From positions 62,001-126,000 of the forward strand of contig CDMY01000261.1 in the NCBI GenBank assembly GCA_001179505.1: a stretch of DNA of 64,000 nt, in the 5' to 3' direction. Below, piece by piece: positions 141 through 59,655 of this stretch; within the stretch, counting starts at the first letter, position 1; every line of letters begins with the position of its first letter. The DNA comes from Vitrella brassicaformis CCMP3155 (lineage: Eukaryota; Protista; Chromerida). The notes under the pieces are model-generated. The model ran no database searches. It was not told the origin of the DNA and saw only the letters and a list, made by a program, of their open reading frames with translations. A program made the translations under genes and the position numbers.

Positions 141-158
141 AGCTCGCAATTGCAAGCT
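141..158. promoter_or_regulatory. TGCGAGCT motif (minus strand, 141-148) paired with a one-mismatch inverted copy TGCAAGCT (151-158), upstream of the TPS gene
   Basis: Sequence agctcgca-at-tgcaagct, about 510 nt upstream of ATG 658. The same 8-mer recurs upstream of other genes in the window. Confidence 0.5.
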
Positions 159-657
159 CACAAGTGTCACGAAGGCGTGCAGCACGGGACGGTGTGTGGC
201 GAGAGCGTTTGCTGCAGGCAGCGAAAAGGAGGCGTATCTTGGCGTCACATGTGAATCAAGCGTGAGGCTGCTGCCAGAGTGACAGGGCAAACAGCGGCTG
301 ACCAGTGAAGAGGAGCATACGTGCCGGCGGCTCCTGAGCGAGTTGGGCTGAAGATCTCAGCCAGAGAAGCGCATCAGGTGCGAGCAGACAGGCACAGCCA
401 GCAGTCGATGGTGCACTGACTGTTGTGCGTGGGCGCCAGGGGTCAGCCAGCCGGGGGAACCGTGTCAGTGGAGCAGCCAGGCAGTCAGAGGCCCGCGCCT
501 GTGTCATGCGAGTGAATCGTTTTCTGCGTCTGAGACACACTGCACTTACCTGCTGCGTCTGTCTGTGCGTCTGTCTGTCTGCGTGTGTGTGTGTGTGTGT
601 GTGCAGGGCAGGGAGGGGTGCATTCATTGCCCGTCCCAGATTGTGTGCGGACGGCCG

Positions 658-3600
658 ATGATGAAGCTGTACACTAAGGTGTTCTTTCGGGCGGTCTTCA
701 ACACGGACTTCGGGGAGCGGGTGCGGGTCGTGGGCGACTCACCGCTGCTCGGTATGCTCGATGGATGGATGGATGTGTCTGTGTGTGTGTGTGTCATCCG
801 CTGTCTGTGTGTTTGTTCTGTGTGGCAGGTTCGTGGGATCCCAAGAAGGGCCACGAGCTCAAGACCAGCGAAGAGCTGTAAGCACCGAGCCAGCCAGTCT
901 ATCTATCTGCTTCGTCGAGTCCATCCATCCACCGATGCATGTCATGTGTGTGGTGTGTGGTGTCTGTCAGGTTTCCATCATGGTTTTCGCTGGAGCCGAT
1001 CTTGCTGCCGATAAAGGAGAAGGTGCAGTACAAGTATGTGATTGTCGACGAGACCGGCAAGCTCATCAACTGGGAGGAAATCGAAGACAACCGAGAACTC
1101 GTGCCCACCGGTGAGAGAGGGAGGGAGAAAGGGAGGGAGCAAGGCAGGCAACAGGAAGCGAAGCGAAGCGCGCAACCAGCGGTCTGTTGGCTGGCTGGCT
1201 TGTAGGTGTGGAGATGACTGTGGAGGACGACAATGGGCTGTATCGCGAGCAGACACAGAGCCATCTCGAGAGCTACTCGATGGCACTCGACGCAGAACAG
1301 GTGCACACACAAAGCACACACACACACACACGCACGCACGCACCAGATTCACCACACAAAGCACAGACACGTCAAGAATTTATCCGTGGACTCATTTCAT
1401 TGGTGGCTGCAGCAACTGGTGACGGATTCCAAGCAGCGCGAGGACCAGGTGACGCAGGCGCGTGTGACGTACGTGCACCAGCAGGAGATGGACTCCATGA
1501 TCGACGAGAACGACACCCTGCTCGTCGTCAGCTTCGAGCTGCCCGTCAAGGTCTCCAAGTCAGAGGACGGACAGTTCGTCGTCACCCCGGGAAAGGTCAG
1601 TCAGGGTCTGCCTATACGTCTGTGTGTGGATGGATGGGGTGGCTGGCTGCGTGTGGTGTGGTGTGGTGTGGTGTGGTGTGTGCAGACGGCTTTGTTGCCG
1701 ACGTTGTATCAGCAGCGGAAGAAGACCAAGATCCCCGTCAAGACCATCGGGTGGCCGGGCATACACGTGGAGGACCCGAGAGATCAGGAGGAGGTCAGCA
1801 GTGAGTGCATCCATGGGTGTGGGGTGTGTGTTGGTGTCCATCCATATATTGCATTGTCTCGTGTGTGATGTGAGCAGATAGAGCGCTTGTTGGCAGACTA
1901 CGACTGCCACCCGGTGTTTCCCCCCAAGAAGGAGCTGGACGAGTACCTGGCCTTCTGCCACAGATTCCTCTGGCCCCTATTCCACAACGTCGTCATACTC
2001 GACACGCAGTACAGTCACACACACACGCACACACACACACGCACACACATACACGTAGAGAGAGACTGTGTCTGAATGTGTTCACTGATGCCGTCCGTGT
2101 CTCCGCGCGTGTGTGTGGTGTCATTTCTTTCATTCTCAGTTCCCAGCAGCCGTTCAACAACGAGCAGTGGGGTCACTACCAGGCCATGAACCGCCTGTGG
2201 GCCGAGGCGGTCGTCAGGGTGGCGCACGAGACGGACCTCATTTGGGTGCACGACTACCACTTACTTGTCGCACCTCTGGTCAGTCAGTCAGCTGGGCTGC
2301 CTGGGCAACAAACACACCACGTCTACAAGTGATGGCATCAATCACGGTGTACCCTCTGTGCTGTGTGTGTGTAGTTTATCACCCGTCGTATTCGCAAAGC
2401 GAACGTGGGTCTCTTTCTGCACATCCCTTTCCCCTCGTCAGAGATATTCAGATGCCTCCCCGTCAGAGAAGAGGTCAGTCGACACAACACAACCCAAAAC
2501 AACCCACACACACGTGACCGGACCGAGCTGAGCTCTGTAAACACGAATCCAATGTGTGTGTGTCATGGCCATGACTGACAGATCCTGCGTGGGATGTTGT
2601 GTGCGGATCTGATTGGATTTCACTTCTTTGAGTACGCCCGCCACTTCCTCGTCGCCTGCAAACGGCTACTCGGCATCGAACACCACTGCAGGTTGGCACA
2701 TAGACACCCCACCACGTGACGCACCCACCGCACACACCCCACACCAACCACTGTGCACTCACTCACTCCGTCGTCCAATCAGGATGGGTGGGTTTCTGGG
2801 TCTTGAGTACGGCGGGCGCAGCGTGATGCTGCGCATCGGCCACGTGCACATCCAGTATGACGACCTCCGCACCATGATCGAGAGCTCTGACGAAATCAAA
2901 AGGATGACACAAGACATCAGGTCCGTCTCGCAAAGAAAGGACTGCATTAACACGCACAGTCAAGCTGGCGTCGTGTGGTGCATTTCTGTGTGTGTGTGTG
3001 TGTGTGTGTGAATGACGTTGACAGGTCCAAGTATGAGGGTCGTTACATCTTTGCGTCAGTGGATCGCTGCGAGAGGCTGGCGGGGCTGATCCTCAAGATG
3101 CGCGCCTTCCAGAACTTCCTCAACACCTACCCTTATGCACAGGGCAAGGTCGTCCTCATCCAGGTGATGAGCTCACTGAGCCAGCCACGATAGACATCAC
3201 AGATGGACGGATGGATGGACGGCTGGGGGCGTGCAACCAACCATGAATGTGATGTGATGTGCAGTATGCCTATCCGACCATCTCTTACTGGGACGACACC
3301 TCGCGAATGCGGAGGGAGCTGACCAACATCGTCGACAAGATCAACACCGACTTCCAGGACCTTGACGAAGGACGGGGGGCGTCAGGTGAGTGGAGTGAGT
3401 GAGGTCAATCAACACACGCCAGCCACACCTGCCCACACACACCCCCACGCACAGCACAGCACAGGTGGATGAGATGAATGGCTGGCCTGCTATGCTCTCT
3501 CTTTGCCTGTCCTGTCAGGTCACACGTCTGAGTTCCACCACGTGGTGTTCCAGGTCAAGGAGGTGACGCGGGAGGAGAAATACGCACTCTTCCAGGCAGC

Positions 3601-8168: not shown

Positions 8169-9296
8169 CTAGGCCACTGTCGTGACCCCCTGCGTCAGAC
8201 AGGCCACATACTCCCGCCACATGAGCGTCCGCTCAGGAAACCGCAGCAGCCGCCGCAAGTAGTCGCTGATGAACTCAGGAGACGTCTGGTCCCGCCCCTC
8301 TGCCAACAGGTCATACGTCACCACGGCAGCCCCCCGGTCGATCTCTCTGTCCTCCGTCACATAGGGGTTGACGCGCGTCAGCATGCGGACCACGCTCTCG
8401 GGCGACGCCCATATGGGGCGGTCTGCCGTGCGCATCTGCAGCTGCCGCAGGCCGTCCATGTCGGAGGAGGCTTCTAAAGCCTGACGGTAGAGTTCCCCGA
8501 CCAGCCTGGGGCGATCTTCGAGAGCCTCGTATGGGTAGCAGAAGGGGAGGTACGGCAGCAGCTCCACAAACTCGTCACGCGAGATGAACTCTGTCGGGGT
8601 GGCTCTCAGCTTGCGGCCCGCCTTGCCCTTCCTGAAGCTGCCGGGCGGCCGCGGCAGCTTCTTCTCCGCCCGACCCTCCTCATTCAGAAACCGGTTGAAG
8701 GGATTCCGCTCCTTTGAGTCCAGCCCGTGTGTCGCCACCCACGTCAGCAGCGCCTCCCTATCGAGCCCCTCGCCCTCGCCGGCGTCATCCGCCTCTCTCA
8801 GCATCCTCTTCATGTCGAAGAGCTTGAACCACGGCGCTCGGCAGAACGCGGTGGAGTCGGCGGGCATCTGCCACCCCCGCTCGTTGTCCTTGCGGCGGTT
8901 GTCGATTCGCCTGGCGTGTTTGAAGGTCATCTGCTGCATCTCCTTGGTCTGTGCGATGCCCCACGAGAAGCCGCCTGCCTGCTCGGCCAGGCGGCCGAAG
9001 ACCTTGATCATGTCCATGTACTGAAAACCCGGCTCGACCGCCTGTCGAGGTCTGCTGTCTAGTCGACTTGGGAAGCGGCGAGTGGGTGAGCTGATCCTCC
9101 GAGTCGACGCAGCGATAGCCACGGAGGATGCTTCACCAGGCCGAATGGCTGGCGCCAGCAGCAAGCACCACAGCTGGAGAAGAAAGCGACGAAACGGTAA
9201 TGAAGATTTCCTTCCCGCATGCGGTCTTGAGACCCAGGGAGTCGACAGAGGGTCACCGTGTGGTGCTGGATCTGACGTGCTGGCGTCGGCGGGCAT
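8169..9296 (-). CDS. Intronless hypothetical protein with a recessed signal peptide and transit-like leader; EF-hand-like segments
   Basis: 375-aa ORF with a GC3-rich body from MDMIKV. FRRFLLQLWCLLLAPAIRPGEA is followed by S/R-rich SSVAIAASTRRISSPTRRFPSR. Segments DDAGEGEGLDREAL and TEFISRDEFVELL. Confidence 0.7.
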   Translation of the reverse strand: MPADASTSDPAPHGDPLSTPWVSRPHAGRKSSLPFRRFLLQLWCLLLAPAIRPGEASSVAIAASTRRISSPTRRFPSRLDSRPRQAVEPGFQYMDMIKVFGRLAEQAGGFSWGIAQTKEMQQMTFKHARRIDNRRKDNERGWQMPADSTAFCRAPWFKLFDMKRMLREADDAGEGEGLDREALLTWVATHGLDSKERNPFNRFLNEEGRAEKKLPRPPGSFRKGKAGRKLRATPTEFISRDEFVELLPYLPFCYPYEALEDRPRLVGELYRQALEASSDMDGLRQLQMRTADRPIWASPESVVRMLTRVNPYVTEDREIDRGAAVVTYDLLAEGRDQTSPEFISDYLRRLLRFPERTLMWREYVACLTQGVTTVA

Positions 9297-9428
9297 GGGA
9301 TCTGCTGAACAGTCGTCTGTGGACTCGCAACGGATCTCGATGAATGGAGCCCGTCACGGTCTGCACGCGGACAACGGGCACGCGATGACAGCCTCGCCTT
9401 GAGAGGAGATCAGCGATCCCCTGTTGAC

Positions 9429-9436
9429 TGCGAGCT
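9429..9436 (+). promoter_or_regulatory. TGCGAGCT motif in the divergent gap between the hypothetical gene and eIF3m
   Basis: ctgTGCGAGCTaag-like context (gacTGCGAGCTaag) in the 228-nt gap between ATG 9296(-) and ATG 9525(+). Confidence 0.55.
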
Positions 9437-9524
9437 AAGAAGCAGAGATCTGCAGCCGCCAGGCTTCTCACGCTGTGTCCACGGCTGCGTCGGTGTAGGC
9501 TGTTGATTGCATTCATTGAGCATC

Positions 9525-14274: not shown

Positions 14275-14308
<34 letters not shown>

Positions 14309-14689: not shown

Positions 14690-14697
14690 TGCGAGCT
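14690..14697 (+). promoter_or_regulatory. TGCGAGCT motif in the divergent gap between the coiled-coil gene and MORC
   Basis: atgTGCGAGCTgag between ATG 14557(-) and ATG 15080(+). Confidence 0.55.
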
Positions 14698-15394: not shown

Positions 15395-15425
<31 letters not shown>

Positions 15426-17182: not shown

Positions 17183-17216
<34 letters not shown>

Positions 17217-20200: not shown

Positions 20201-22948
20201 CGAGATCCGTATCGAGCACAAGACTATACCCAACTCAGGCAAAACGTGTGTCAGCGGCCCAGGCCAACACATACACACACAAGACGTATGTGATGTGGTG
20301 TGTGGATGATTGTGTGCGCGTGTCTGTCTGTCTGTCTGTGAGGGTGTTTAGGGCGCTGCTGGTGTCTGACAACGGCTTTGGCATGGAGGAGTCGACTTTC
20401 CATCGGTGGGAAGCAGGAATCACCACACTGACATACACACACAGACAGACACGCCAGCCACGGCATCTAGATCTGCCCCTATCTATCTATCTATGTATCA
20501 GGTTTCTGCACTACTGGGGCGACCCATCGGACACCCCTGGCAAGAGCCACCAGTACGGCATGGGCTTCAAGATGGCCTTCGCGCGCATCGCCAGGAACTG
20601 CCTCGTCGTCACCAAAGCCAAACACACCATGAGTGAGTCAGGGAGTGAGGGAGAGAGACAGTGAGTGCCTGCACTGCACACACTATGGCACCGCACCCAG
20701 CCGACTACATAACGTTCTTGGTGTGTGCAGGTGTCGGCTTGCTCAGCCTGGAGCTGCTCGAGGAGGCTGGCGTGCGCAGAGGCATCGGCGCACCGGTATG
20801 CAGCCATACGAAGCGCGCCCCACAGCACCGTGTGTCTTGACACACGTGTGTGTGTATGTGTGTGGGTGGGTGGGTGTGGGTGTGCAGACGCTGAGCTGGA
20901 ACCGCGCCACCCGCAGCCTGACGAGCGGCCGCGACGTCCGTCCGCACCAGAACCTGATTCTGCAGTACGGGCCGTGGCAAGACGCTCGACAGATCAGCGA
21001 AATGCTCGAGCAAATCCACGATGAAGGNNNNNNNNNNNNNNNNNNNNNNNNNNNNNNNNNNNNNNNNNNNNNNNNNNNNNNNNNNNNNNNNNNNNNNNNN
21101 NNNNNNNNNNNNNNNNNNNNNNNNNNNNNNNNNNNNNNNNNNNNNNNNNNNNNNNNNNNNNNNNNNNNNNNNNNNNNNNNNNNNNNNNNNNNNNNNNNNN
21201 NNNNNNNNNNNNNNNNNNNNNNNNNNNNNNNNNNNNNNNNNNNNNNNNNNNNNNNNNNNNNNNNNNNNNNNNNNNNNNNNNNNNNNNNNNNNNNNNNNNN
21301 NNNNNNNNNNNNNNNNNNNNNNNNNNNGGCGTACTGGGCGAACGCATCACTCCCTCACTGACTCTTTCACCGTTCAGGCACCATTATGATGTTCTATGAC
21401 ACCCGGCCCTGGACCGACCTCGACCACCTCTACGAAGCCGACGCCTGCCTCCGCATCCCACACAACGCCAAGACGCACAAGGCTCACACCATGCACCAGA
21501 CGACACCCACCCCACAACCACCACCACCAGCACCAGCAGCGGAAGGGAGGGAGCAGAATGGCGACCATGAGGGCAGCAAGGAGCCGCCGTTGAAGCGCGT
21601 CAAGGACGATTCGGCGACCATGATGGACGTCGATGTGGCTGCGAGTGGGGGCGGGGGCGCGCCTGAGGCCACGAGTGTGTTGGACGTGTGTGAGAGGTTC
21701 CCCTTCTGGAGTGACGCTCGTGGGTCGCCCGACTACTGCATGGCCACCTACCTCTTCTGGCTCTACCTCACGCCGCCCGACCAGACACCCAAAGTGGTCA
21801 GTCAGTGTGGGTCGGCAAATGGATGGATGGATGGATGGATGGGCGGGTGTGTCTGAATCCTTGTGGTGTTCAGGCGTTGTATGTGCAGGGCACCCGGCTG
21901 ACCGACCCCCGGGTGGAGCAGCAGCTGCTCAAGGTGGAGGACTCAGACATGCCGGATGCCGCACCATCACCCGCCCCTGTCCCTGCCTCTGCACCTACCC
22001 CTGCACCGCCGCAAAGCGAAGCCCCACCACCAGCGCCAGCACAAGGACCAACAGCACCAGCCCCGCCCCCCGCAGCAGCAGCTGCTGCTGCAGAACCAGC
22101 CTCCACACCAGCCAGCGAGGCACCGCAGCCGGCTCCAGCAGCAGCAGCAGCAGCAGCAGGTCCCCCCGACATGGAGGCCTACGTGAATGAGTGGATCCGA
22201 GCCGCCAGCACCGACAGCTCCCAGCCCTTCCATCCATACGTCACCAAAGGTGGTGGTCTATGCGCCACCATCGTGCAGGACATGCTCTGTCTCATCGCCT
22301 TCCTGCCCCCCTCACCCGCACCACTGGCCACAATCACCCTCCAACAGCTGGACTCCTTCGTTGCATCGGAGCACCTCAAGGATGCCAGGAGGGAGACAAG
22401 AGCCACGTGGAGCGACGAGTCGATCGAGGAGTTCAAAGGCTGCATCATCCGCTCCAGGCCTGACGAGGTCGAGGGGAAGGAGGAGCAGGGTGCTGCTGAT
22501 GGCGCAAGCGTCCAAGCAGCAGCAGCCGCATCCGCAGCAGCAGCAGCGGCGCCACCCTCACCCTCCTCTCCAGCACCAGCCCGCCCCTCTGGTGACACGA
22601 TGGACATTGACAGGCAGGAGACGACGGACGAGCCTCTCCCGCCGCCACCACCACAGCAGCACCAGCCACAGCAGCAGCAGCAGCCATCACCACCCCCTCC
22701 ATCGCTTCCAGCACCGACCGCCGACCAGCCGCCGACCACCTTGGTGGACGTGCTGACCCACCGGCTGCACTGTGCAGTGGAGCTCAACTACCTCTTCACG
22801 CCCAGCGACCAGGCGGAGGGCGGCTGGGGGATGCTGGGCTTCATCAACAAGCCGCCCAACCACACAATGAGAGCCACCCAAGACCGGCTGTGTGTGAGTG
22901 AGGCAGGTAGGTCATTCGGACAGAAAGACACTGAGGTGTGGGTGTGCA

Positions 22949-27958: not shown

Positions 27959-27988
27959 TGCGAGCTAAAGGATGTGCGTCTGCGAGCT
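27959..27988 (+). promoter_or_regulatory. Two TGCGAGCT motifs (27959-27966, 27981-27988) in the divergent gap between SSADH and the secreted protein
   Basis: attTGCGAGCTaaag and gtcTGCGAGCTtag in the 254-nt gap. Confidence 0.6.
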
Positions 27989-40368: not shown

Positions 40369-40499
40369 GTGTGCTTCCGTGTTGTGTGGTGTGGTGTGGT
40401 TGGTTGGTTGTTTGCTTTGTGTCGATCAGTCAGTCAGTCAACCAGCCAGCCGACGTTAGCAGGCACGGATTGCAATTGATTGTACCGATATCACACGTA

Positions 40500-43400
40500 C
40501 ATACACGTCCTTCAAAACATGCCAAGCAACACAACAGCTACATAGCAGACTGATTTCTTTGTCATTGACTGCAACGCACACGTGCATGCACAAGAAGGCA
40601 GCCAGGCGAACAAGACAACAAGACTCACAAGCAGGTAGGCAAGATGCAAGAACAACGTGCGCACACTCACATCGTCATGTGGTCAATCATCGTCCATCAC
40701 CATCAGTCACTCAAGGAACGAAAGACTGAATCACTCACTGAGCCATCCGCCCCTCCCTCTCCCTCCATGGCCACCCCCTCTCCATCCATCCATACATCAT
40801 TGATCCATGATGCATCCGTGTCGGTCAGTCATAGTGTACATCGCCTCAAGACAAGTCTGTTGTCCGGGAGCCAGCGACCAGCGCATCAACAGGCCAACCA
40901 CTCCACCCCATCGCCACCCGCCCCAATCTTTCCTCTCGTCCCCTTTGTTTGCGCCCAAAAGACCGAACAACGAGACCATCACACCACACCACGTACACCG
41001 ATAGATGGACGGAAGCAAACAAACGAACCAACGGTACAGATACATCCAGATAGATATGGATATGGATACGTACACGGCCTGGCCCCCTATAGATGACCTT
41101 CCATCCACTCGCCTGCCAGCCAGCTTTCAATTGGAATGCCGACTTGACCTGCGGGGATGGATGGATGGATGGTGCATAGATAGATGTACGTGTGTGTGTG
41201 GACATGCGCATGGATGGTGGAATGGATTGGAATGCGGGAGGGAGTGGGGACACGACGACGACGCGCACAGATGCTCACAGACACACACACACACACACAG
41301 CCCAGCCACTTCCTCTCTCTCTCTCTCTGCATGCAACAGGCACGACCGACCGATCGAGCGGTAACAGAGTTGGCGACCGACAGAGTGTTGGAGACAGAGG
41401 GTGACTAAGGCAGGTAGGTACGCAGTAGGTACGTACGTAAGTCATTGTCTGAGGGTGGGCGGGTGAGACAGAGGGCACAGCACAGCCATCCATATATGCG
41501 CGAAGTGGGAAAGCGTGGACTGGAGGGACGAGTGTGGGCGTGTGTGTAGATGGGATGGGATGACCATGTCATGTGTCGAGGGGAAAAATGGAAAGACTCT
41601 GCGAGCGAGCGACTGAGAACTAAGACAGCTCTGTGAGCAAGCTCATGCTTTACGCAAGGAATAGAGAGACGGAAAAGATACATATGTGACCCCTCCCCCC
41701 TCCCCTTCCCTCAGCTCCACCTCAGAGCCCTACCTCCACCCTCCCCTCCCTCCCCAGAGACAGACAGACAAATGCCACCATTCCAGATCCTCCCTCCTCC
41801 TTCCTTTATTGCCACCACAGATAGAGACCAAAACCGCCGACGCGCCACGCGTCAATCCAGCGAGCCACCCACCCACCAACCACCACACCAGACCACACCA
41901 GGCCAGGCCAGGCCAGAACAGAAGAGAACAGACAGTAGAGAGACGAGGGAGGGGAGAGGGAGGATGGGACGGAGGGAGAGACCAAACAGCAGACGCCGCC
42001 CGCACACGACACACATGACGCACACACCTGTGCTTCATCTATGCGGTATGAGCTGATCCAGCAACCTGGACATCCATGCCATGGATGGGCGTGCGCACAT
42101 GTGTCATGACGCGGCCGCGCGCGACAGACAGACAGGAGAAAAATGGAGGGCAGTGAGATAGATAGAGGGTGGGTACAGCGAAGCGAAGCGAGTCAAGTGG
42201 AGTGTAGAAGCGGGAGGGAGACAAATCAAGGCGAAGGCCAGGCCAGGTAAGGCAGATGAAGTTTGAGGTGGATGGATGGATGGATCGTATGTAAGCAAGG
42301 ATCACCCACGGCACGGCACGGCACGCTATAGATAAATACATGACATGTATATGTATGTGTATATGTGTACATGCATGTGTGTACGAACGAATGCACTCAC
42401 TCCCACCCCATCAGACACAGACAGACGAGAGACAGACAGAGAAACACCCGACGTGAATGAAAGTGGAAGAGTGTGTGGTAAAGACTTGAAGTCGAAGAAG
42501 TGGTAATCTCTGCCCCTCCCCATCCATCCGCCAGACAGAGAGCTCCCCCAGATCAGACCGTCAGTCCAGATTAGTCAAGTGTCCCCGTGCGATAAGTTAG
42601 CTGAGCTGCTCCCCGCCATTCCTTCAAAACCTTCACAGCCTCACAGCCCACCACACCGACCAGCCCCCTTCCGTCACGCAGCATTAGACCTTCCTTCATT
42701 CGTATGTGCACCTACATCGCCACTCATTGCTGCCACTGCTCTGTGGAACATGCATGCCCATCCTCTGCAGGAGGCAGCACCTGCTCTATATCAAGACGAG
42801 ATGCATCCTCAAGCAGCAGACAGACACGCGCGCACCAGCAGCCGCGACCAGCAACGTCGAGGGCGCATCCAGACCGATTCGTGCACGCGTCGTTGAAAGC
42901 AGTATCCCTCGCAGAAGAGATATAGAGACAGCCAGCCCTCCAAAACTGCCGACATGCTCGCTGCTCCCTCCCAGCTACGTAGCACAAAACCTGACTGAGC
43001 CAAACACACACACACATGCATACAAGACAGCACACGACACGACAAGACACGACACGACAAGGCACCACACGACACGCAGGAAGAGATGGATGATGCTTGA
43101 GAGCGAGATGATAAGAGTCGACTGAGCGGGAGAGCGCAGAGGAGAGCAGAGCAGCACCAGAGCACGGGCATTTACGGGAGGACACACTCAGCGACCGACA
43201 ACCTCTCATTCCGACACACAAAGACGCGCATCGACATCAGTTCTTCTTCTTCCTTCCAGCGGCCCTTTGAAAGCCAGCCAGCGTTAAGACACACACGAAG
43301 ACCACCATTACACGACCGGCCAAGGCACACACGCCCCCCTCCCTCTCTCCCTCCCTCCGTCCCTCCCAGACAGTGGTACAAATACTTGAGTATGCACCCA

Positions 43401-46400
43401 CCACCACGCACTCGGGGGCGTGGCCCATGATTCACTCACCATGCACACAATGAGGGAGGAAGACTCCACGTCTTGTCAGTCAGGGGAACGGGGTGGCCGC
43501 TAGAGAACCGACAACATCGTGTGTGAGAGCCACAGAGTCTCACAACCACGGAGTCAGTCAGACAAGTAAGTAGCCAGCCGGAAAATTGATGCAGCACCTC
43601 ACACCACACACCACACACAAGACACAACACCACACGCAGGGCAGCCAGGCGACCACACACATCCATCCACACCTCACACACATACAGACGGTGCCTGCCT
43701 TCAAAACTGCCAGTGCTCCCCCCCGCAGAACACACCGCAACCACACACTGCACCACTTATTCATGCCATGCCTTCGCTTTCACGCACTCAGTCGACCATT
43801 CGCAACGTTGTCTGCTTCGCATCGTGTGCCGTGTGTGTGTAACGCCGCTCCCGCCCCTCCACAGCCGAAAAATAAGTGCGTCCAGGTAGCTAGCTGTGGA
43901 AGAGCGAGCAGGTGCCAATCAGTCAGTCAGTCAGACGGTGGGGCACGCCGGCGGCGACAAAACTGCAGGCCGCACACAGAGTGGGCGGCCGCAGAGGGGC
44001 AAGAGACATGGCAGTGAGAGCGAGAAAAAAAAAGCGTCGACACGCAGACACCTGTTAGGCATGGTGTGCACACACGAGACAGGATGCACCCTGTGGTCCA
44101 GGACGGCTGGGACCTCATTCACCCAACTTCCGCCCTCTCTCTCTCTCTGTGGCGCGTTGTGTGGCCTGGCTTGAAAGCTCAGCCGTCCATCGAGGGGGCC
44201 ACACATGTCAAGAAACACCGATCGGCCCAAATGCACACAGCAACACACTAGCCAGTCAGCTGCCCACCAGGTGTACTTGATGGACGACGAGCGGCTCATC
44301 TCATCTCTCTTCGTCACCTGAGCGGACTGCCAGGGCGTCAGACCAGCACTCGTAGTGAGTGGCCTAGCGCACCGCTCATACGACGAACAGGAGACAAAGC
44401 GCAGCCACCACCACAGGATGCATGGCATGGTGAATGTATGGGATCCCAACCAGCCCAGTGCCCCATGCATGTGGTGAATTGCGGTGCGGTGCAGTGTGGT
44501 GCGGTGTTGCAGACTCACTCGGACACACTGACTGGGCTGCAGGCAGGCAGGCAGGCAGCCAGGGATATACAAAGGCTATCTTTACACACAACATAGTACT
44601 CTTACTTACTTAGATACTTACGTACTTACCACTCACTCACTCAGTAGTCAGTCACACTCAGTGCCCTCCGTGACTCCCTCTCTCGTGTCGGTTAAATCTA
44701 TCTTTCTCTTGTCCCTCCCTCCCTCCCTCCCTCTCTCTGCGGGCTCTCAGGTCTTCTCAAGTGCGCGGCCTGCCTACCGGTTTACACCAACACGTACGCA
44801 CATCGGTGAGCGGGTCAGTCAGTGACTGGGTGAGGTGAGGTGACATGGCGGCGGCTCGGGTCGGCTCGCCGCTGTTTGAAAAAAGCGCTACACGCATCCA
44901 TTCGTTCCTTTCCTCAGTCCATAACGCTGTCTGTCTTGCTGTCTGTCTCTCTCTCTGCGTTGCCGCCACAAATAAGAGTGAGTGAGTCATACATAAGCCA
45001 GTTAGTTCGTCATCAAGGTTAAAAAGAAAGAGGCGCGTGAGGCGATGAATGGGAGTGTGCGCACCAGTGAGTAAGTCAGTCAGTCTCTGATCGGTTGGTG
45101 CACTGTGCAATCAGTCAGTTTGTCGTGAATCGGTCGGTCGGTCGGTCTGCCAGCCAAAATTGCCCCAGACGCACGCACGAACACACTCACACGAACGAAC
45201 GCACACACAACACAGCCGTCTCTCTGCTGAGCACACCACGCACTCATCATCCACACACGCGCGCACTCCCCACCATCTCAGCTCGTTCGTCAAGTCAGCA
45301 CCAAAACTGCTTGTACGTGTGTGCCTGCCTGGGTGTGTGTGTATCTGGCTGTGTCAACGTGCAGCCGCGCTTGCCTCGACAAGAAAATTGGACGACAGAG
45401 AGCACAGCCGGCCGGACCAAGCCAAGCCAGGCCAGGCGGGAGAAAAGGGGCGGTCATGAGACGAACGGACAAAGCAGTCAGACAGTCAGTCAGTCAGTCC
45501 AACCTTCCAGCGAGGCAGCCCCTTCCAGCCAGGCAGTCATCAAGCAAGGAGGGCACACAGGGCCACCCACCCGGCACCGGGGCTTCTGCCGGCGCTTCAT
45601 GCATTTATTCACGCGTCACGTACGCTAGGCATGTATGTATGTATGGTACACACACACACATGGATTCAACCTGTCAGCACCAAGCAGCCAGCAAGCCAGG
45701 GAGGGTAGCAGACTTAGTGGGCGGGCGACCAAGCCACACTCACACACACGATCAGTCAGTCGGTCAGTCAGCGACGCTGTGCTCTCTCTCTTTCTCTCTT
45801 TCTCTCTCTCTCTCTCTCTTTCTCTCTCTACTAGCGTAACAGAGACCGTACAGAGGCCTCCCAGCAAGAAATAACTTGTCGGGCCATGTCAGCTGATCCA
45901 TGTATGGTATAGAATCGAGTAGGTAGACAGGACATGACGTGACGAATGTATGTATGCCGCCGCCGAGTGAGTCCTCAGTGAGCAGGCACAGCATAGCATA
46001 GCATAGCAGCCAGCCAGACAGCCAGTAGTGAGCACCACCCAGGGATGTCAACAAAAGGGCCGGGTGGAATCGGCCAACGCTCTGTTGTTCATCGATCGCG
46101 GTGGAGTCGGCACCGAAAACATCCCGTTGGTCGGCCCAGCCGCATCCATCCATGTGTGTGCAAGCAAGTACGTACGTGTCCGGCAGACCAAAGGCAAAAA
46201 GACACACACACATACACAGACAGACAGACATGAGAGCGGTCAGGCAGACAGAGATAAAGCCTAAAACGATGGACCCCCGGACGGTCCACGCACCTGTGTA
46301 TGACAGGCGGCGCAGTCATGCATATGTATGCATATGCATGGCATGGATGGCATCCATGTAATGTGCGCATGTACCCACGTACGTATTCCCAGCCGCATCA

Positions 46401-48702
46401 AGGGACACCCACACACATACAGACACACATACACACACACCGAGACAGGCAGGCAGGCCATGCAGTGGCATGAAATGGCGTGGCGTGTTCGGGAGGGTGG
46501 GGAGGGAAGGGAAAACTAGGCAAGCCAAGCAGACTAGAGGACGGGACACCGAGCCACCCACCCCGCCAGCCGCGCACACAAACATACAACAGCATACAAC
46601 CGACAACCGACAACAATCAAGTAATAACGACCAAAAAGTCCGAAGGAAGACTCACCTCACTCGACTGCACCGGATAGGCAGACAGGCAGGCAGGCCTCTT
46701 GCCGTGCATGTGCATCAGTCACGCGCCATGTGCCCCCACGCCCTCCCTGCCCCTCCCCTCCCCTGCCGTTCCTCCTCCCAGGCAACACCGTATTCGAGAG
46801 AGTGAGTACTCATCATTCTTCTGTCATTGATATCATGGGTGGGTAGATGGCCGGATGGACCGATTAATTAGCACGGTAGGTATGCAACGCATCATTCACA
46901 GCAGAGGGAGGGAGGGAGGGAGAGGCGGCCATCGAAGGAGTGAGCTTGGCTCAAAGGGGAAGAATCGACAGGGCGGGGAGAGGAGAGATGGGGGAAAAGA
47001 GCGCGGGCACGACAGCACAGCACAGCACAGAGGGCTCTCTTTGTTTGTCTCAGTGGAACGAACGAATCGAATTAGCACCACCTGCCTCTGCCTGCCTGGC
47101 AGACTGACTGACTGGCTCAACCGCGCGTAGAAGAATACGTACGTTGGTACGTATGGCAGTATGGGAGGGAGGGAGTCACTCACTTCGGACAAACAGATGC
47201 ACAAGCAAGAAAGCAACAACAAGCGACAACAGGCAACAGACACCCATTCATCAACACGACAGCAAGAGATGCCAACACGGATACACTCATTACAGACATA
47301 TCGACACACACGGCATGAGACGAGACGAGACAGACACACTTGACAAAATGCGACGGCGAGGAAGGAAAAGTGAGTACGCGACAACCAGGAAAGGCAGTGA
47401 GTTAAGTGGTGAATGGGTGGATGACGACTCGGGAAAACAGGCAGGCTTGCATCGTGCCGTCATCAAGCGAGCGAAAGAGGTGTGCCATGATGGATGGCTC
47501 ATGGGTGGCAAAACTGCAGCAGCCGGGCGCATACCTATCTAAGCACGCACTCATCGATCATCCTCTTCATGCCTCCTGCATGCCATCCTCTGTCACATCC
47601 ACGGCAAAACACTGAGTAAAGGAAAAATGGTAAAGGAGCGGGCCGCGTGGTGCTCACTCTCGCTCTCCCTCTCGTCTCTGGTGCTCGTGTGCATGTCTGA
47701 TTCGTATACGCAAGTCCGCCCAATCCATCCATCCACACTGTGTGCTCACGTCAGCCGGCACCCTCCCCTGTCTGCGCGCCGGCCCATCCCAATCTGTGGG
47801 AGGCGGCACACAGCCAAGGAGGGAGGCGCACACGCCTATAGGCAGGCAGTCAGGCAGTCAGGCATCTAGGTAGGCAACGGACAAAAATAATAACGGTGCG
47901 CCCCATGTCATGCCGTGCCATGCAATGAAATGTAGTGTAATGCAATGAAATGCAAAGCAATGGTGTCGGACATTAGTTGAACCCTCGACAACAATCAAAG
48001 ACAGCCAGTCTGGGTGAGTGAGTGAGTGAGAGAGTGATATGGCGCGTCGGCCTGCCATCGACATGGTGTCTGTGCTGTGGTGGTGCGTCGGGTTCGCCCA
48101 CTCCAGTAGCGGAGGAGCAGCGCACCACCGCAGCACAGCAAGGCAGTACTTACGGCTGGTCGGTCAGTCACTGTGCTTCGCCCACCCACCCCCTGTATGT
48201 GTGTAAGTATCCAATCCATCCATCCATCCATCCACCCAGTCAGCCAATCAGGCAGGCAGGCAGGCAGGAAGGGAAGGATGCATCAACAAATGAAGAAAAG
48301 ACGTCGGCGTCTGTGTGTCTCTGTGAGTGTCTGTGTGAGTGTGTGTGTGGATGTGTGTGGATGCGTGTGGGTGCAGGCAGGTACAGGACAGATCGGAGGG
48401 CACAGCGAAGAGTCAGTGAGCATTAGCAGGCACTCACGCACACACACACACACACTTACAAGCAGCCTGAGAGGAAGACAGTAAGCAGAAACAAGTTTCG
48501 TTCGTTCGTCCGAGTCAGTCAGTCAGTCAGTCCGTCAGTCGAGCCAAATATGACGCCAAAAAGCTCATTCGAGAGGGACACCCAGGCGACAGACAGAGAG
48601 ATCGAGACAGAGGGCGGATATACAAGTGGACAGGTGGTGCAGAGAGGGACAGAGCTTATGAAGGTCTCCACAGCGATACGATAGAGCGATATAAACACAC
48701 AC

Positions 48703-48737
<35 letters not shown>

Positions 48738-49800
48738 CAGGCAGAGAGTTCTCTTTCCTTCCCGTTCGTTCCTTGCTGATTCATCCATCCGTCCATCCGT
48801 CAATCGGGTCGACACTAGGCAGCCAGACACACACACGAGAGGCCACAGACAGAGGCGAGCCAGCCAGCCAGCCTGCCTGCCATCTTTGCTTTCTCTCTTT
48901 CTTCCTCCCGGTAGCTATGTTACAGCTCACCACACGTACGTCACTCACTCAACGATCGACCAACCCACTACGCACACGCTCACGGCCACGCGCACGACGA
49001 CACGACATGACACATCCAGGCTCAGCGCAACGGCAGACACATCGGCGGCACTGACCAAGGACGGTCGCACGTATGCAGGTGTATGTGTATGTATGTATGC
49101 ATGTCTGTGTCCCTGTTTCCTCTTTCCTGTGTCTCTAGTGAGACGGCCAGCAGCATTGAAACGGCCATACCATGACCATCACCGTCACCAGCAGGCAGAC
49201 AGGCAGAATAGCTGAGGTGAGATGAGGGGAGATGAGATGAGATGAGATGGCTGCCCGACGGAAGATAACCGCGACCACACATCCCTCTCTCCGCAAACAA
49301 GACGTATTCATTCAGTCATGCAGGCAGCCACCCCTCCCCCATTCAGTCAGTCAGGCAGTCAGTCCCAGTGAGTGAACGAGTCGAATCGACTCTCCTGCAT
49401 CGGTCGAATCCGATCTGCATCCGTCCGTCCGTCCCTCTTCTACGGGCGGCAGGCATCGTGTAGATGGCTGGATGAATGGATGGATAGATGGATAGATGGA
49501 TGGGCATGCTCTCATCATCCAACAGGCCACAAAGAGCATTATAACAGCCAGCCAGGCAGCCAGGCAGACAGACGGACAGACATCAGCCAGTGGAGCGGAG
49601 GAGTGGAGGGAAAACAGGACATAGGCAGGCAGGCAGTCAGTCAGGCAGTCAGGGAAACGGCATGGAAAATTCCCGGATAACATCACTACAATCAATCATT
49701 CAACCAGACAGACACTCAGACGAGACGACACAGGTGCAGACCCTCCTCCCCTCCCTCCCTCCCTCCCTCCGCCCTCTCACACACACCACTCAGTCAGTCC
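40500..49800. repeat. About 9 kb microsatellite-rich region with no credible coding exons
   Basis: Dense (CA)n, (GACA)n, (GGAT)n, (CAGT)n, (GGCA)n and (GA)n tracts; all ORFs are low-complexity (HTHT, CVCV, RQTD). Confidence 0.75.
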
Positions 49801-49878
49801 TAACGCACCACAAAGTGAATGCAATGCTACCATCCCATCTGGCCCGGCCCCCTCCATCCGTCCACCGATCCATCTGCC

Positions 49879-52800
49879 TCATGCGCCCCCTCGGCCCACG
49901 GGCAGTTGGCTCCTGCGAGACGACGACACCTCCCCAAACGAAGAAAACCAGCTCCGGAGGGACATCCGCAGCCGGGGCGCGCTATTAGCCCCGGCCGCCT
50001 GCCCATCCTCGCCACACGCGCCACTCTCCCGCTCAGTGTCGCGGCGCTCTATCGGCTCGTCACACTCGGGGATGCTCGGCAGCACCGTCAGTGCCTGTGA
50101 GCGGCACCGCGCCCCTCGTGTACCGCCCTTGGCCCGCCTCCCGCCACCATAGCTGCGCGGCAGCACCGACGGCCGCGTGTTGGTGTAGTGGTAGGTGGAG
50201 TAGAGGACAGCGGCATGGCGAGCTTCAGCCGCCGACTGGAGGTCCGGCAGCGAGGAGCGACGGTGGGTGTGGGGCTGCATGAGAGGGTGGAAAGTGGTGC
50301 TGGTGGTCCGGGCGCCGGGAGGGGGGAACGACTGGTTGACAGACGGCAGCGACCGCGACCGCTGCACGGGCATGGTGGGCGCGTGCTGCTGCTGCTGCGG
50401 TTGTGTGTCAGTGTGGTGGTCGTCGAATGCCTCATCCTCCTCTGGCGTCCACCAGGGGTCGATGTCGTCATCATTGCCGGAGCTCAGGGGGTCGCTCGAT
50501 GGCGTGTGGGGCGACTCGTCGCCCTCATTGTCACAGAGGCCGTCATCGTCGGGAAGGCATGACAGGCCGCTGCCGTAGAGATGAGGACTGTCGCTCATCG
50601 ACCGCCAAAGGACCCGGGCCCCCTCTGCCGCCTCGCCGTCATCCTCTGGTCCGTCGGGCGACACGCCGAGGGGCTCCAGCGGGACAGCTGGGGTGGTGCC
50701 GTCACTCCTCACGTTGTCTGTCTGAGGAGCGGCCTCCCGCTCCCCTTTCTCCCTCTCCTGCCTCTCCGGTAGACTGTTGCCGTCGGCGGTGTTCTGCTGT
50801 GGCCTCATCCACGCCTCCAGGAACTGGGCCATGCCCCTCACCTCACCCTCCTGGCCGCCCTGCTCCTGCCCCAGCCGGCGCTGCGAGAGCTTGAGGCTGA
50901 GCAGACTGGTGGGCGGCTTCTCCGGCAACGAATGACACATAGGAAAGGTTGCGCTGGTCGACGCCTCGTCCAGCCCGAGGGCGAGGGGAGGGAGGGCGAA
51001 GGAGCCGCACGCCGCCAGGCCCTGTGGGGGCATCTCCGCCTTGGCCACAGGGTAGGACGCCGGCTGTGCGAGGCAGCCGCGCGAGAGTGCGGCGAAGATG
51101 GTGCGGGGTGGGAATGGCGGCGAGTCGTCGCTGGACGTGGAGCACGACTCGGCGCACGACAGTGGCGACGGGGTGGCGACCATCCGGCACATGGATGGGG
51201 GCGAGGCCGGGATGGGCTCCGTTAAAACCTTGAGTGTCTTGCGCAGCTGCTTCTGCCCATCCGCCACGGCACGGCGACCCTCGGGCGACAGCAACCCACT
51301 CCGCAGAGTGTCCTGAAATGCACATACATACACATTGCACACGTGATCGATGCACCGCACCCAACCAAGTGTGTGGTCTGACTCGCCGGTCACTCACTCA
51401 CTCACCTCGAGGGCCTCGATGTTCTGCCTGAGTTGTGTTTGCGAGTGGCATGCAATCGGGATGTTGAGGAAAAAAGGAATCGCACCTTCCACGAGGTAGC
51501 GTTCCTGCAGCGCCCTGTCCTTCTCCTCCACCATACTCACCCCCACTCCCATCCCCACACCACTGATGCCCTGAGCGATATCCAAAACTTCAGCAGTGAC
51601 CGACGCCACCAGCACCTCCAGCGCGGCACCCACAGGCCCCTCACACAGCCGGCCGCCCGGCGGCGACAATGGCTCCTCGTCACTGCCATTGGTAATGCTA
51701 GACAGGGCGGCTCGCGAGAGCGGAGAAACGGCGGGGCATGTGGGGGCTGGTGGGGAAAACGAAGCGGACGGGAAGGATGTGGCGAGTGAGGATGGGGTGG
51801 AGGCAGACGTGGAGAAGGACGACGGGGAAGGGCAAGCCGTCAGCGATGGCGACGCCTTGGGGTTGAGCGACGGCCCCACCGAGTCGGGGGACGACGCGTG
51901 CACCGTCCGCTGGGACAGGGGCGAGTCCGGCCACAACATCTGACACACATATGACACACACGTCAACAGCACGTAATGGGGATCAGTTGTGTGTGAGTGT
52001 GTGTGTCCCTGGCCCACTCATTCCCTGCCTCTCGGCTCACCAGTTTGGAGCATGTGGAATCGACGGGCGACTCCATGGCACATGCGCATGACGGCCCACA
52101 GAGGCACTGGCCGACACACCGGCCGCAGCACCCGCTCTGTGGCCGCAGATACACCTTGAGCAAAAGAACCAGGCACGCCAGCTTCAGCTTTCGCGGAATC
52201 TGATTGAACCATCAAGCAAAGCAATCCATCAACACGAGCCGTATGAATGAATGCATGGCTCATACGTCAGATGCCGCTCCGTCCCATTGCCACTAACTGA
52301 CCTGTTTACGCCTCTCTTGCTCGAGGTGCGCATGTACGGTCACGAGTTTGGCCAGCCCTGGGCCCGTGAGGAGCCTCTGCACGTCCTCTAGGCAGCCCTT
52401 GGCTCCCACACACAGACTCGACAACAGCGACATGATCGTCGCATGATACGAATACGCCTGGACAGGACAGGACAGGACAGGACAGGCAAGGCACACAACA
52501 CAGACAGGACAGGACAGGCAGAGGAGAGAGGCAACGCAACACGTCCGTCGAGGCCATGCCGGCAGTGAGACACACATGCATTTGCACATGTCCGCTCATG
52601 TGAGCGCGTGAGACATGTGTCTGTGCACCCACCAGGTCGAGATGTCTTGCGTCCAGCTGGCTCCACCAGTCAGCGTCCCCCAGCGACTCGAGCAGCTCCC
52701 CCCTGGCAGGCATGAGCGCCTCCAAGACGGCCTTGTTAAAATGCCGACATCCCCTGGCGCGATGCCCAGCAGCAGGGGAGCCACTCGTCATGGACCGGAG

Positions 52801-53093: not shown

Positions 53094-53120
53094 TGCGAGC
53101 TCAAGAGGCTCGTGCGAGCT
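53094..53120 (+). promoter_or_regulatory. Two TGCGAGCT motifs (53094-53101, 53113-53120) in the divergent gap between the RIH-like and plastid genes
   Basis: ccgTGCGAGCTcaag and tcgTGCGAGCTtgc in the 224-nt gap. Confidence 0.6.
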
Positions 53121-53144
53121 TGCAGAAGAGAAGAAAGGAACGAG

Positions 53145-53914
53145 ATGGCTGGACCTACAACAACCACTGCCGCGCTGTGCTGCGCGATTGTCGTTGCCTC
53201 TGCGGGCCACGCCATGGACAGCTCCTCATTCGTGAGCCCCTTTGCGAGAGTCACGGCGCTGAAGACGTCATCCAGGCAAGCAACCAATGGAGGAGGCCCT
53301 CACTCACCTCTTCTGCCATTCATCGGTTGAGATCTTATATATGCGCATTGTTAACAGGCCCATTATTCGGCATCGGGGCACCTCGCTTGAGATGCAGTTT
53401 GGCTTTGGCAGCAAGGAGAACGAGGAGCAGAAGCAGAAGCGATTTGAGATGCAGCAGGTGATCACACACATACCAAGCCAACCCACCACACGGTGCTGCA
53501 ATCAACCGCTGGTGACTCCCTTGCTCACAGGAGATCCTTCGTAAGCGTCGCGAAGGCGATCCCCTGAAGAGCAAGTACAAGCCCAAGGAAGCCGCCGAGG
53601 GCATGCCGGGCAAATCGGAAGGAGGTGAGTCGGCCCGCGTGTGGCCTGCAAGAAACGGTCGGCCCACTCATCGTTGGTCTGACCGTCTGGCTGTGTGTGT
53701 GTGTGTGTGTGTTGTTACGGCTGCAGGATCTGTCAACTACCAGATCGGCACGTCCTTCAAGTCGCAGCCGGGTGGGGAGGACGACGGTTGGGTGCTCGTC
53801 AAGGGCAAGTGGCGCTACTACCCACAAAACGTCAAGGAAGGCGGGGGGGAGAGCGGGGCTGCCCAAGGCAAGAAAGAGGAGAAGAAGAAGACGGGGCCTT
53901 TCGGCCTCTGGTGA
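53145..53914 (+). CDS. Small probable plastid-targeted protein, 4 exons
   Basis: Exons 53145-53275, 53358-53457, 53531-53624, 53727-53914. Signal AALCCAIVVASAGHA, transit-like SSSFVSPFARVTALKTSSRPIIRHRGTSLEM, mature QFGFGSKENEEQKQKRFEMQQEILRKRR..KKTGPFGLW*. Confidence 0.8.
53276..53357 (+). other. GC-AG intron
   Basis: Donor CAG|GCAAG and acceptor AACAG|G is the junction I found that puts the signal-peptide exon in frame with the downstream exons. Confidence 0.65.
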
Positions 53915-55775: not shown

Positions 55776-56019
55776 GGTTGACGGCTGAGGAAGACGGAAC
55801 AGGTACCTCGGGCAAGAAGCGGGGGAACAGGCACCGAGGGACAGAGTCTATCCGCAAGTATAGCACCCCAGATGCCAACAGATGATCAGCCACAGGGCGA
55901 TTGAAGCGGAGAACAGGACAAACACGAAAGGTGTGGGGCAGCTGCCGATGCGTAGACAGTCTGAGCTCCATCTCCGTCAAATTGCGTGGCTCCTACACTT
56001 TCTGACGTCACGCCAGTCT

Positions 56020-56027
56020 TGCGAGCT
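56020..56027 (+). promoter_or_regulatory. TGCGAGCT motif in the divergent gap between ARF and the coiled-coil gene
   Basis: tctTGCGAGCTcg between ATG 55775(-) and ATG 56112(+). Confidence 0.55.
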
Positions 56028-56111
56028 CGTCTGAGTCTGCGGGCCCCCACCCACCCCCAACTGGAGGCAATTGACTTGAGGAAGCACGTGCCATACACAC
56101 AATATGCGAGG

Positions 56112-58212: not shown

Positions 58213-59471
58213 TCAGATCTCCCACACCGGCTTGTTGGCGTCAGTGGTTTTCTTGGCCTTCTTCTTCTGCACAACACGACGCACAGCACCTCGGTACAGT
58301 GTGTTGCCATGTGTGTGCCATCTGTGTGTGCGTACGTTTCTGTCGAGGTATTTGTGTATGTGTGTCTTGATGGCGTTGGTCTTGGCCACGTCCAAAGGCG
58401 TCAGGCGCTCGTTGTCCTCCATGTCAGCAAATACCTGCTTGTCGGGAAAGTCAGACAGCAAACACTTCACCTACGCACCATAGACACCAGAGAGGGAGAT
58501 CCAGAGACACGTGATCATCCCGCCAGCCTTCCTCTCCTCCTGTGTGTGACCGCGTCCTCTGCGCCACTTCGCGCCGCCAGGTGTAGGGGAGTCAACCTGC
58601 ACGCAGCCACAGTGATTGCGCGCGTCCATATGTCTACGATGTGTCATGTCTCCTCACTTACAGTGCGATTGTCGGTTTGTTGATGTCGGCCCCATGGTCC
58701 ACCAGCCACTTGATGGCGCGGGGATGGTTGCCGACGCACGCAAAGTGCAGTGCCGTGCGGCCCAACTTGGTCTCAGCATTCACGTCAACACCTAACAAGA
58801 ATTATATGAAGCCACGTCTCAGCCCATCATCAGCCAGCCGACCGACCGACCAGCGCTGAGTGCGAGTTGAATGATGTCGACCTCCCCTTGCCAGGCGCCA
58901 TGGTGCAGCAACGTCTGAGTGGAGAGACAGACGCACACATGACGGAACGCCCGTGTCCGCGCCGAAGCGCGCACGCACCATCTCGCTCTCTGGGTCTTTG
59001 ACGGAGAAATCCACGTCAAAAGCCTGCAATGCCCTGCGTTGCAGAACGGTAGGAAAAGAAGACAGTAATCGATCAGAGGGCCCAACATGGAGGAGAGAGG
59101 AGATTTCACACACCGGATCTTCTCAAAATCTGGCTTCTCCTTCGTGATCTCCTGCATCAACTGCACCCATCCATCCATGCGCCAGCACAGACAGAGGCGC
59201 ACACACGTACACACGCAAGATTCCCCAGCCCCCATGAATGAATGAATGCTTTCTATACCTGCCTAGTACCTACCTTCATCTGGAAGCGTCTTGCGAGTGT
59301 GACGGACTGTCTGGCCTCCGACGAACGCTTCCCCCCCATCGGACTCTGGGCCTCCTTGATCAACTCCTCCGCCTCATGATCGATCTCGTCGTCATGACCC
59401 TCATCCCCACCCTTGCTCAGACGTACACCTCGCAACTCCTCAGCGATGAGCGACACATCTGCTGCTGCCAT
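58213..59471 (-). CDS. Small ankyrin-repeat protein, 8 exons
   Basis: Ankyrin motifs TLLHHGAWQGEVDII, GRTALHFACVGNHPRAIKWLVDHGADIN, LTPLHLAARSG, LTPLDVA; exon phases are consistent. Confidence 0.88.
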
Positions 59472-59647
59472 CCTCCCGACACTCAGCCTGCATGCCAAGA
59501 CAGACATCGGTGGGAAAGACAGTCACTGACAGTCACTAACATGGGGCCGTCAAGAAAGCGCGAAGGGCCTGCGTTTCCTCTCACCTATGCGATCAACGGG
59601 GGAAGTTGATATTCCTCCTCTCCTCTCTCTCTTTTCTTGGCTTCTTC

Positions 59648-59655
59648 TGCGAGCT
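59648..59655 (+). promoter_or_regulatory. TGCGAGCT motif upstream of the ankyrin gene
   Basis: ttcTGCGAGCTaag, about 177 nt from ATG 59471(-). Confidence 0.5.

Follow-up and report, generated by a model that had tools for sequence, protein, structure and literature searches.

Occurrence and sequence specificity of TGCGAGCT in the window

The window analyzed here, a stretch of 64,000 nucleotides of contig CDMY01000261.1 from Vitrella brassicaformis CCMP3155, contains nine exact copies of the 8-mer TGCGAGCT when both strands are counted. The first-pass annotation had named these nine copies by eye (141 on the minus strand, all others on the plus strand), and the exact both-strand count recovered the same nine and none that had been missed. 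The copies, the transcript ends mapped near them and other features of the locus are listed below.

141..148, minus strand: exact copy of TGCGAGCT, reading AGCTCGCA on the plus strand, located between a signal-peptide protein gene on the minus strand (ATG near window position −2) and a plus-strand trehalose-phosphate synthase/phosphatase gene
151..158, plus strand: TGCAAGCT, one mismatch from TGCGAGCT; together with 141-148 it makes up an imperfect everted palindrome
163 and 171, plus strand: starts of the trehalose-phosphate synthase/phosphatase mRNA contigs (L059 and L060, two runs; protein P0011)
163..378, plus strand: non-coding first exon of this mRNA
379-603, plus strand: leader intron of this mRNA; ATG near 656
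9415 and 9423, minus strand: mRNA contig ends of an orphan gene (282 aa)
9424, plus strand: mRNA contig start of the eIF3 subunit M (eIF3m) gene
9429..9436, plus strand: TGCGAGCT, between these two genes, at positions +6 to +13 of the eIF3m mRNA
9446..9451, no strand: companion palindrome AGATCT, 9 nt past the 9429 copy
14665, minus strand: end of spliced RNA contig L052 of a multi-exon gene (~11.4-14.67 kb)
14690..14697, plus strand: TGCGAGCT, between this gene and a long plus-strand gene
21028..21327, no strand: assembly gap, unrelated to TGCGAGCT
27959..27966, plus strand: TGCGAGCT, forms a direct pair with the next copy (gap 14); flanking genes: aldehyde dehydrogenase (minus strand) and a plus-strand gene
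27981..27988, plus strand: TGCGAGCT, second of this pair
53090 and 53104, minus strand: ends of transcript contigs X1 and X6 at the 53094 copy
53094..53101, plus strand: TGCGAGCT, forms a direct pair with the next copy (gap 11) and coincides with the minus-strand mRNA 5′ end
53113..53120, plus strand: TGCGAGCT, second of this pair, 11 nt ahead of a plus-strand mRNA contig start
53131, plus strand: this contig start; ATG at 53145
56020..56027, plus strand: TGCGAGCT, flanked by an Arf GTPase gene (minus strand) and a plus-strand gene
56051 and 56070, plus strand: starts of spliced contigs X7 and X6
59648..59655, plus strand: TGCGAGCT, head-to-head gap; the plus-strand gene has its first ATG (59674) 18 nt further on

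In dinucleotide-preserving shuffles of the window, 3.13 ± 1.81 copies were expected and none of 100 shuffles attained nine. One-mismatch forms were not enriched (38 non-exact matches versus ~68 expected), and all 24 single-base variants occurred at chance level. Thus, across the reversed-word control, the shuffles, a Markov model and the single-base variants, the excess was confined to the exact word, which contradicts a composition artefact. The inverted pair that the first-pass annotation had seen at 141-158 is indeed present as AGCTCGCA, AT and TGCAAGCT, an imperfect palindrome; the variant TGCAAGCT was not generally enriched.

The assembly gap lies within a long plus-strand gene, for which exons are predicted at 20867-20983 and 21377-21496. 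Since it is >6 kb from any copy, it does not affect the observation, and at the genome-wide density its ~300 unread letters would hide ~0.03 copies. Protein searches found no relatives of the orphan 282-aa gene and no recognizable Chromera protein among the matches of eIF3m and the trehalose-phosphate synthase.

Genome-wide abundance and extended forms

The V. brassicaformis CCMP3155 genome contains 7,692 copies of TGCGAGCT and 2,061 copies of the reversed word. The copies above background thus number ~5,600, against 22,817 Vitrella genes. By chance alone ~1/4 to 1/3 of all copies are expected, and several copies lie inside exons. In a 264-kb sample, TGCGAGCT was the top-ranked non-periodic 8-mer (31 copies versus 8.8 expected); periodic words had been removed from this ranking, which tetranucleotide microsatellites otherwise dominate.

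The fuller form of the word is (ATC)TGCGAGCT(T/A)AG. Two extended versions were each ~55-fold more frequent than their controls, TGCGAGCTWAG with 1,389 versus 25 copies and ATCTGCGAGCT with 451 versus 8. Beyond this, the sequence around the word was unrelated between copies, with at most 0.19 bits at flanking positions over 54 copies. Because the flanks vary from copy to copy and share no extended sequence, a dispersed repeat or transposon end was rejected.

Location relative to genes

All nine copies in the window lie in head-to-head gene gaps, seven in number. Tail-to-tail gaps contained no copy and, in agreement with the first-pass annotation, neither did exons, introns or the gene-free stretch at 40.4-49.9 kb. 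A Pfam and tandem-repeat search gave no explanation for this stretch, and no exact-protein matches were found to two ORFs and one spliced product.

Positional statistics covered the 264-kb sample and 30 motif-centered loci. Predicted divergent gaps account for 5.5% of the sample sequence but for 19 of its 31 copies (P = 9e-17), and convergent (tail-to-tail) gaps for none of them, as judged on a self-trained coding-potential map, which is not an annotation and with which same-strand promoters cannot be counted. Of the 50 classifiable copies, 34 had neighboring genes pointing away from them on both sides (minus strand to the left, plus strand to the right). First-ATG and ORF-length heuristics were uninformative, because first exons are short. 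In an unbiased comparison of k-mer content between divergent gaps and the remaining sequence, sub-words of TGCGAGCT ranked first at k = 7 and second to fourth at k = 6, where AGATCT was ahead of them. On a second sampled scaffold (C7), about half of the predicted divergent gaps had no exact copy; hence, the word is not universal. A "housekeeping" role as proposed was not apparent; the flanking genes are a mixture of conserved genes (eIF3m, Arf GTPase, aldehyde dehydrogenase, trehalose-phosphate synthase) and orphans.

RNA ends near the word

The ends of 11 assembled RNA contigs, representing eight genes and five of the seven gaps, lie 3-43 nt from a copy of TGCGAGCT. As these are contig ends and not cap-selected reads, the true start sites are uncertain by tens of bases. 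At the two gaps mapped from both sides, the divergent RNA ends were ~1-40 bp apart. Relative to the transcribed strand, the word was found either way round, with offsets from about −32 to +13 when the contig ends are taken as approximate starts. The untranslated leaders of the eight genes range from 14 nt to >400 nt and one contains an intron, which indicates that the landmark of the word is the transcription start and not the ATG. The first-pass annotation had tied the element to start codons, within 25-510 nt of an ATG. This distance is true but uninformative alone, the tight relation being with mRNA 5′ ends: the trehalose-phosphate synthase ATG is ~510 nt away from the 141 copy, whereas the mRNA starts 15-23 nt from it. 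A spliced leader was also rejected, since the RNA contigs align to the genome from their very first base and hence no leader has been added. One observation speaks against the word as a promoter center: RNA contig L052 crosses the 9.4 kb promoter uninterrupted.

Orientation, pairs and a companion word

The orientation of TGCGAGCT was unrelated to which gene is nearer. In same-strand gene contexts, seven of nine copies pointed toward the downstream gene. Genome-wide, pairs of copies with a gap of 0-19 nt were found in all arrangements (459 direct, 183 facing and 97 everted, versus 2, 0 and 0 for the controls), with part of this excess expected from the crowding of copies into narrow promoter regions alone. 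The spacing within pairs was non-random, with preferred gaps of 1-2 nt for facing, 4-8 nt for everted and 4-5 nt for direct pairs. Composites of TGCGAGCT and AGATCT numbered 438 genome-wide, versus 2 for the control.

Interpretation of the word

The most likely reading of these data is that TGCGAGCT is a previously undescribed promoter signal at the starts of back-to-back gene pairs. The earlier suggestion of an element typical of bidirectional promoters is well supported by the genome-wide counts, the location in divergent gaps and the RNA contig ends. More specifically, we consider it probable that the word is a DNA-level cis-element at the center of compact, mostly bidirectional promoters, where it would be bound by a sequence-specific protein in either orientation. 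That a protein binds the word, and that the word helps to cause initiation, is what we infer. A putative DNA-binding protein would recognize TGCGAGCT in either orientation, often as two adjacent copies, and would mark where RNA polymerase II departs in both directions, so that divergent mRNAs may start inside the word or within ~5-40 bp of it on each side.

The closeness of the RNA contig ends to the word, which even lies inside the mRNA twice (eIF3m from 9424 and X6 to 53104), could also be expected of a directional, initiator-type core-promoter element with a fixed start base, each copy of which serves the gene that it points to. The alignment of most same-strand copies with the downstream gene fits such an element as well. 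However, the word occurs in both orientations on the transcribed strand with a spread of offsets, a single copy serves two-gene gaps, facing, everted and direct pairs are all present, and the orientation does not follow the nearer gene. We therefore regard a directional element as rather unlikely. Even less credence is due to the possibility that the word acts in RNA as a 5′ leader element for translation or stability, comparable to a 5′ TOP tract. Although the eIF3m mRNA contig contains the word and one minus-strand contig has its complement at the very start, most mapped mRNAs are without it (starts at 163, 53131 and 56051; ends at 9415, 9423 and 14665), and its orientation relative to the mRNA is variable. 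Moreover, the palindromic pairs suggest recognition of double-stranded DNA, which makes an action in RNA highly improbable.

The evidence is positional and does not separate chromatin opening from polymerase recruitment. Hence, TGCGAGCT might mark promoters but have another job there, for example as a boundary or insulator, in nucleosome exclusion or in replication, with transcripts starting nearby from open chromatin. With RNA ends only tens of bases from the word and with empty tail-to-tail gaps, initiation is the simpler fit, and we deem such another job very unlikely. That the word has no function and simply reflects composition, codon usage or a dispersed repeat is hardly credible: chance would account for ~8.8 of the 31 sampled copies and some copies do occur in exons, but only the exact word is in excess, its flanks are unrelated, and its copies are packed into a small fraction of the sequence.

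The bidirectional cis-element that we favor could be extended to a bolder proposal, in which a single master factor specific to the lineage, perhaps from the expanded ApiAP2 cluster, would bind TGCGAGCT and define a large share of promoters. If this factor fired both ways by nature, the head-to-head and ultra-compact genome layout would rest on one element. We regard this extension as possible but doubtful.

To our knowledge, no publication addresses how chromerids turn on their nuclear genes. The presence of one exact word at many promoter hubs offers a concrete handle on the factor that sets the starts. It could also aid start-site prediction and the correction of gene models, and promoters carrying it could provide a compact bidirectional promoter for genetic tools in chromerid algae.

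Comparison with known systems

The first-pass annotation had viewed the element in an apicomplexan frame, but its source, V. brassicaformis, is a chromerid alga and a free-living relative of malaria parasites. Chromerids are the photosynthetic sister group of the apicomplexan parasites. In animals, TATA-less and bidirectional promoters carry start-proximal, orientation-independent motifs such as ETS/GABP, NRF1 and TCTCGCGAGA. Like these, TGCGAGCT is a short, exact, start-proximal word that occurs in either orientation and is enriched between head-to-head genes, although sequence and organism are unrelated. The divergent RNA ends are also far closer in Vitrella (~1-40 bp at two gaps) than at animal bidirectional promoters. 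Apicomplexan ApiAP2 proteins bind sites such as TGCATGCA and GTGCAC, to which TGCGAGCT is similar in length and in being partly palindromic. With regard to the possible ApiAP2 site raised by the first-pass annotation, a literature search for ApiAP2 together with the 7-mer cores GCGAGCT/AGCTCGC found no paper linking them and no published ApiAP2 specificity that fits the word, logos in figures not being searchable, and a search for the word and for Vitrella promoter motifs returned only primers and unrelated papers, with no description. According to Woo et al. 2015 (PMC4501334), the ApiAP2 family of Vitrella is large, with 50 paralogues in one of its clusters. The same study reported a median intergenic distance of 92 bp and head-to-head neighbors in excess, the architecture that houses TGCGAGCT, but did not describe a promoter motif; "upstream" occurs in it 0 times and "promoter" once.

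According to Markus et al. 2021 (PMC7854901), the motif gCATGCa of Toxoplasma gondii is found in 44% of start-site windows, with a peak ~82 nt upstream of start sites, and is located in the nucleosome-free region, while its binding factor is unknown; bidirectional pairs comprise only ~1/4 of Toxoplasma genes. In Vitrella as in the related Toxoplasma, one short word marks many promoters. In contrast, the sequence is a different one, and the RNA ends in Vitrella lie ~3-43 nt from TGCGAGCT. Comparing TGCGAGCT with the equally unexplained gCATGCa could inform how gene regulation evolved toward parasitism.

Copy number and sequence specificity

An exact search of both strands recovered all nine copies of the eight-letter word TGCGAGCT that the first-pass annotation had located in the window, each in its place, and no others. 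Dinucleotide-preserving shuffles gave an expectation of 3.13 ± 1.81 copies, with no shuffle out of 100 reaching nine. One-mismatch variants were, if anything, depleted (38 in the window vs ~68 expected). In the 264-kb sample, which combines the window with 200 kb of a second scaffold (C7), TGCGAGCT was the top non-periodic 8-mer (31 copies vs 8.8 expected under a third-order Markov model, z = 7.5). All 24 single-base variants occurred at about the expected number, so all eight positions of the word are constrained. The window and C7 are extremely rich throughout in tetranucleotide microsatellites (GACA, GTCA, GGAT, GAGT, and similar), which dominate naive k-mer ranking.

Genome-wide counts were taken over 72,700,666 bases in 1,064 scaffolds and yielded 7,692 copies of TGCGAGCT compared with 2,061 of the reversed word. 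The flanking bases are informative, as TGCGAGCTWAG occurred 1,389 times vs 25 for its control, and the extended form ATCTGCGAGCT 451 times vs 8. Outside these few adjacent bases the flanks are unrelated between copies, which shows that the copies are not a repeat family; an origin of the excess as a composition or repeat artefact was excluded. An assembly gap at 21028–21327, inside a long plus-strand gene, lies more than 6 kb from the nearest copy and has no bearing on the finding.

Location relative to genes

All nine copies in the window lie within seven head-to-head gaps. For the 264-kb sample, genes were mapped with a coding-potential model trained on the sample itself, which recovered the strands of the genes confirmed by RNA contigs. 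Predicted divergent gaps make up 5.5% of this sequence and contained 19 of the 31 copies (binomial P = 9e-17), whereas convergent gaps, 10% of the sample, contained none. The copies at 53094 and 53113, misplaced by the crude gene map, also lie in a divergent gap and are additional to the 19. Several copies within gene blocks are exonic, as expected of the ~9 chance copies in the sample. Within a larger set, 34 of 50 classifiable copies had a left-hand gene neighbor on the minus strand and a right-hand one on the plus strand. In a blind comparison of k-mers between divergent gaps and the remaining sequence, sub-words of TGCGAGCT took first place at k = 7; at k = 6 they stood second to fourth, after AGATCT.

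None of the genes earlier listed as lacking the motif (31033, 34016, 36288, and 40368) belongs to a head-to-head pair. Those at 31033 and 36288 are tandem duplicates of a plus-strand gene (31091–33062 and 36373–38354; 91–95% identical over ~2 kb, period ~5.3 kb), neither with TGCGAGCT upstream. The ~9.5 kb at 40400–49900 showed neither coding potential nor Pfam hits nor tandem repeats, and its plus strand is much richer in A than in T (AT skew 0.06–0.28); candidate explanations are a long non-coding transcript and a very long intron.

RNA contig ends

Transcript ends were taken from RNA contigs aligned to the window and from contigs identified via exact proteins, and are assembled ends rather than cap-mapped start sites. 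Eleven ends, from eight genes, fell in five of the seven window gaps with TGCGAGCT.

Copies of TGCGAGCT and RNA contig ends in the window
Gap 141: copy 141–148; plus-strand ends 163 and 171
Gap 9429: copy 9429–9436; minus-strand ends 9415 and 9423, plus-strand end 9424
Gap 14690: copy 14690–14697; minus-strand end 14665
Gap 53.1 kb: copies 53094–53101 and 53113–53120; minus-strand ends 53090 and 53104, plus-strand end 53131
Gap 56020: copy 56020–56027; plus-strand ends 56051 and 56070

Every end lies within 43 nt of a copy (median ~14 nt), and the leaders of the eight genes range from 14 nt to more than 400 nt. In the trehalose-phosphate synthase gene, ~510 nt separate the ATG from the copy at 141, but the mRNA, whose leader contains an intron (379–603), starts only 15–23 nt from that copy. 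TGCGAGCT thus tracks the transcript start and not the ATG: the placement originally described, upstream of start codons, holds for the 5' side of genes, but the start codon is not the landmark. Divergent RNA ends, which approximate the starts, are separated by only ~1–40 bp at the two gaps mapped on both strands.

One spliced contig (L052, 7103–14665) spans three adjacent genes on alternating strands and reads through the 9.4 kb promoter, which indicates that eIF3m and its convergent neighbor overlap at their 3' ends, and that some RNA covers this bidirectional promoter. The minus-strand gene at 8169–9296 has an mRNA leader of ~400 nt; its database protein has 282 aa (ATG near 9017) and no detectable relatives, and the open frame, counted from an ATG at 9296, has 375 codons. 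In the plus-strand gene starting at 53145, the donor of an intron at ~53273–53354 appears to be GC rather than GT (GC..AG), with the joint found in two RNA runs.

Pairing and companion words

At gaps of 0–19 nt there were 459 direct pairs of TGCGAGCT, 183 facing pairs and 97 everted pairs (controls 2, 0, and 0). Among the pairs listed, direct pairs peaked at a gap of 4–5, facing pairs favored a gap of 1–2, which yields the 17-letter palindrome TGCGAGCT-W-AGCTCGCA, and 38 of 50 everted pairs had a gap of 4–8. The excess is partly due to the crowding of copies into narrow promoters, which leaves the uneven spacing unexplained.

A second word associated with promoters is the palindrome AGATCT (for example at 9446–9451): 11 of 45 sampled copies lie in divergent gaps (~2.5 expected), and its enrichment within 80 nt of TGCGAGCT is 9.5-fold. 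Genome-wide, TGCGAGCT was followed by AGATCT at 0–19 nt 438 times vs 2 for the control, with a favored gap of 8–9 and often as TGCGAGCTTGNNNTGCAGATCT; AGATCT also frequently abuts the 5' side of TGCGAGCT, as AGATCTGCGAGCT. In several promoters the plant-type telomere-like word AAACCCTA adjoins or separates copies (window 28382; G000:C7:4678; G000:C240:148360–148384), as in TGCGAGCT-CAAACCCTA-AGCTCGCA.

Interpretation and comparison with known systems

The TGCGAGCT element is real and strongly supported as a start-proximal promoter motif. A strictly directional, initiator-type element fits poorly, since both orientations of TGCGAGCT relative to the transcribed strand were observed, at offsets of about −32 to +13 from the contig ends. 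An element active in RNA fits poorly as well, because the majority of mapped mRNAs begin after TGCGAGCT. The data are most simply read as a site in double-stranded DNA to which a protein binds; this site would form the hub of compact, mostly bidirectional promoters and would set the position of initiation on both sides. For the bidirectional promoter element initially suggested, the location in divergent gaps and the nearby RNA ends are in agreement; that a protein binds the word and that the word has a causal role we infer.

In its behavior, TGCGAGCT resembles words known from bidirectional promoters of animals (ETS/GABP, NRF1 or TCTCGCGAGA). Vitrella brassicaformis CCMP3155 belongs to the chromerid algae rather than to the apicomplexans, and our literature search found no paper describing TGCGAGCT or tying it to ApiAP2; the element is apparently undescribed so far. 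The Vitrella genome has a median inter-gene distance of 92 bp and an excess of head-to-head neighbors, and no motif was described for it in that report (Woo et al. 2015, PMC4501334). Within the lineage, the closest counterpart is gCATGCa of Toxoplasma, which occurs in 44% of start-site windows, ~82 nt upstream, with its factor unknown (PMC7854901), and which differs from TGCGAGCT in both sequence and position.
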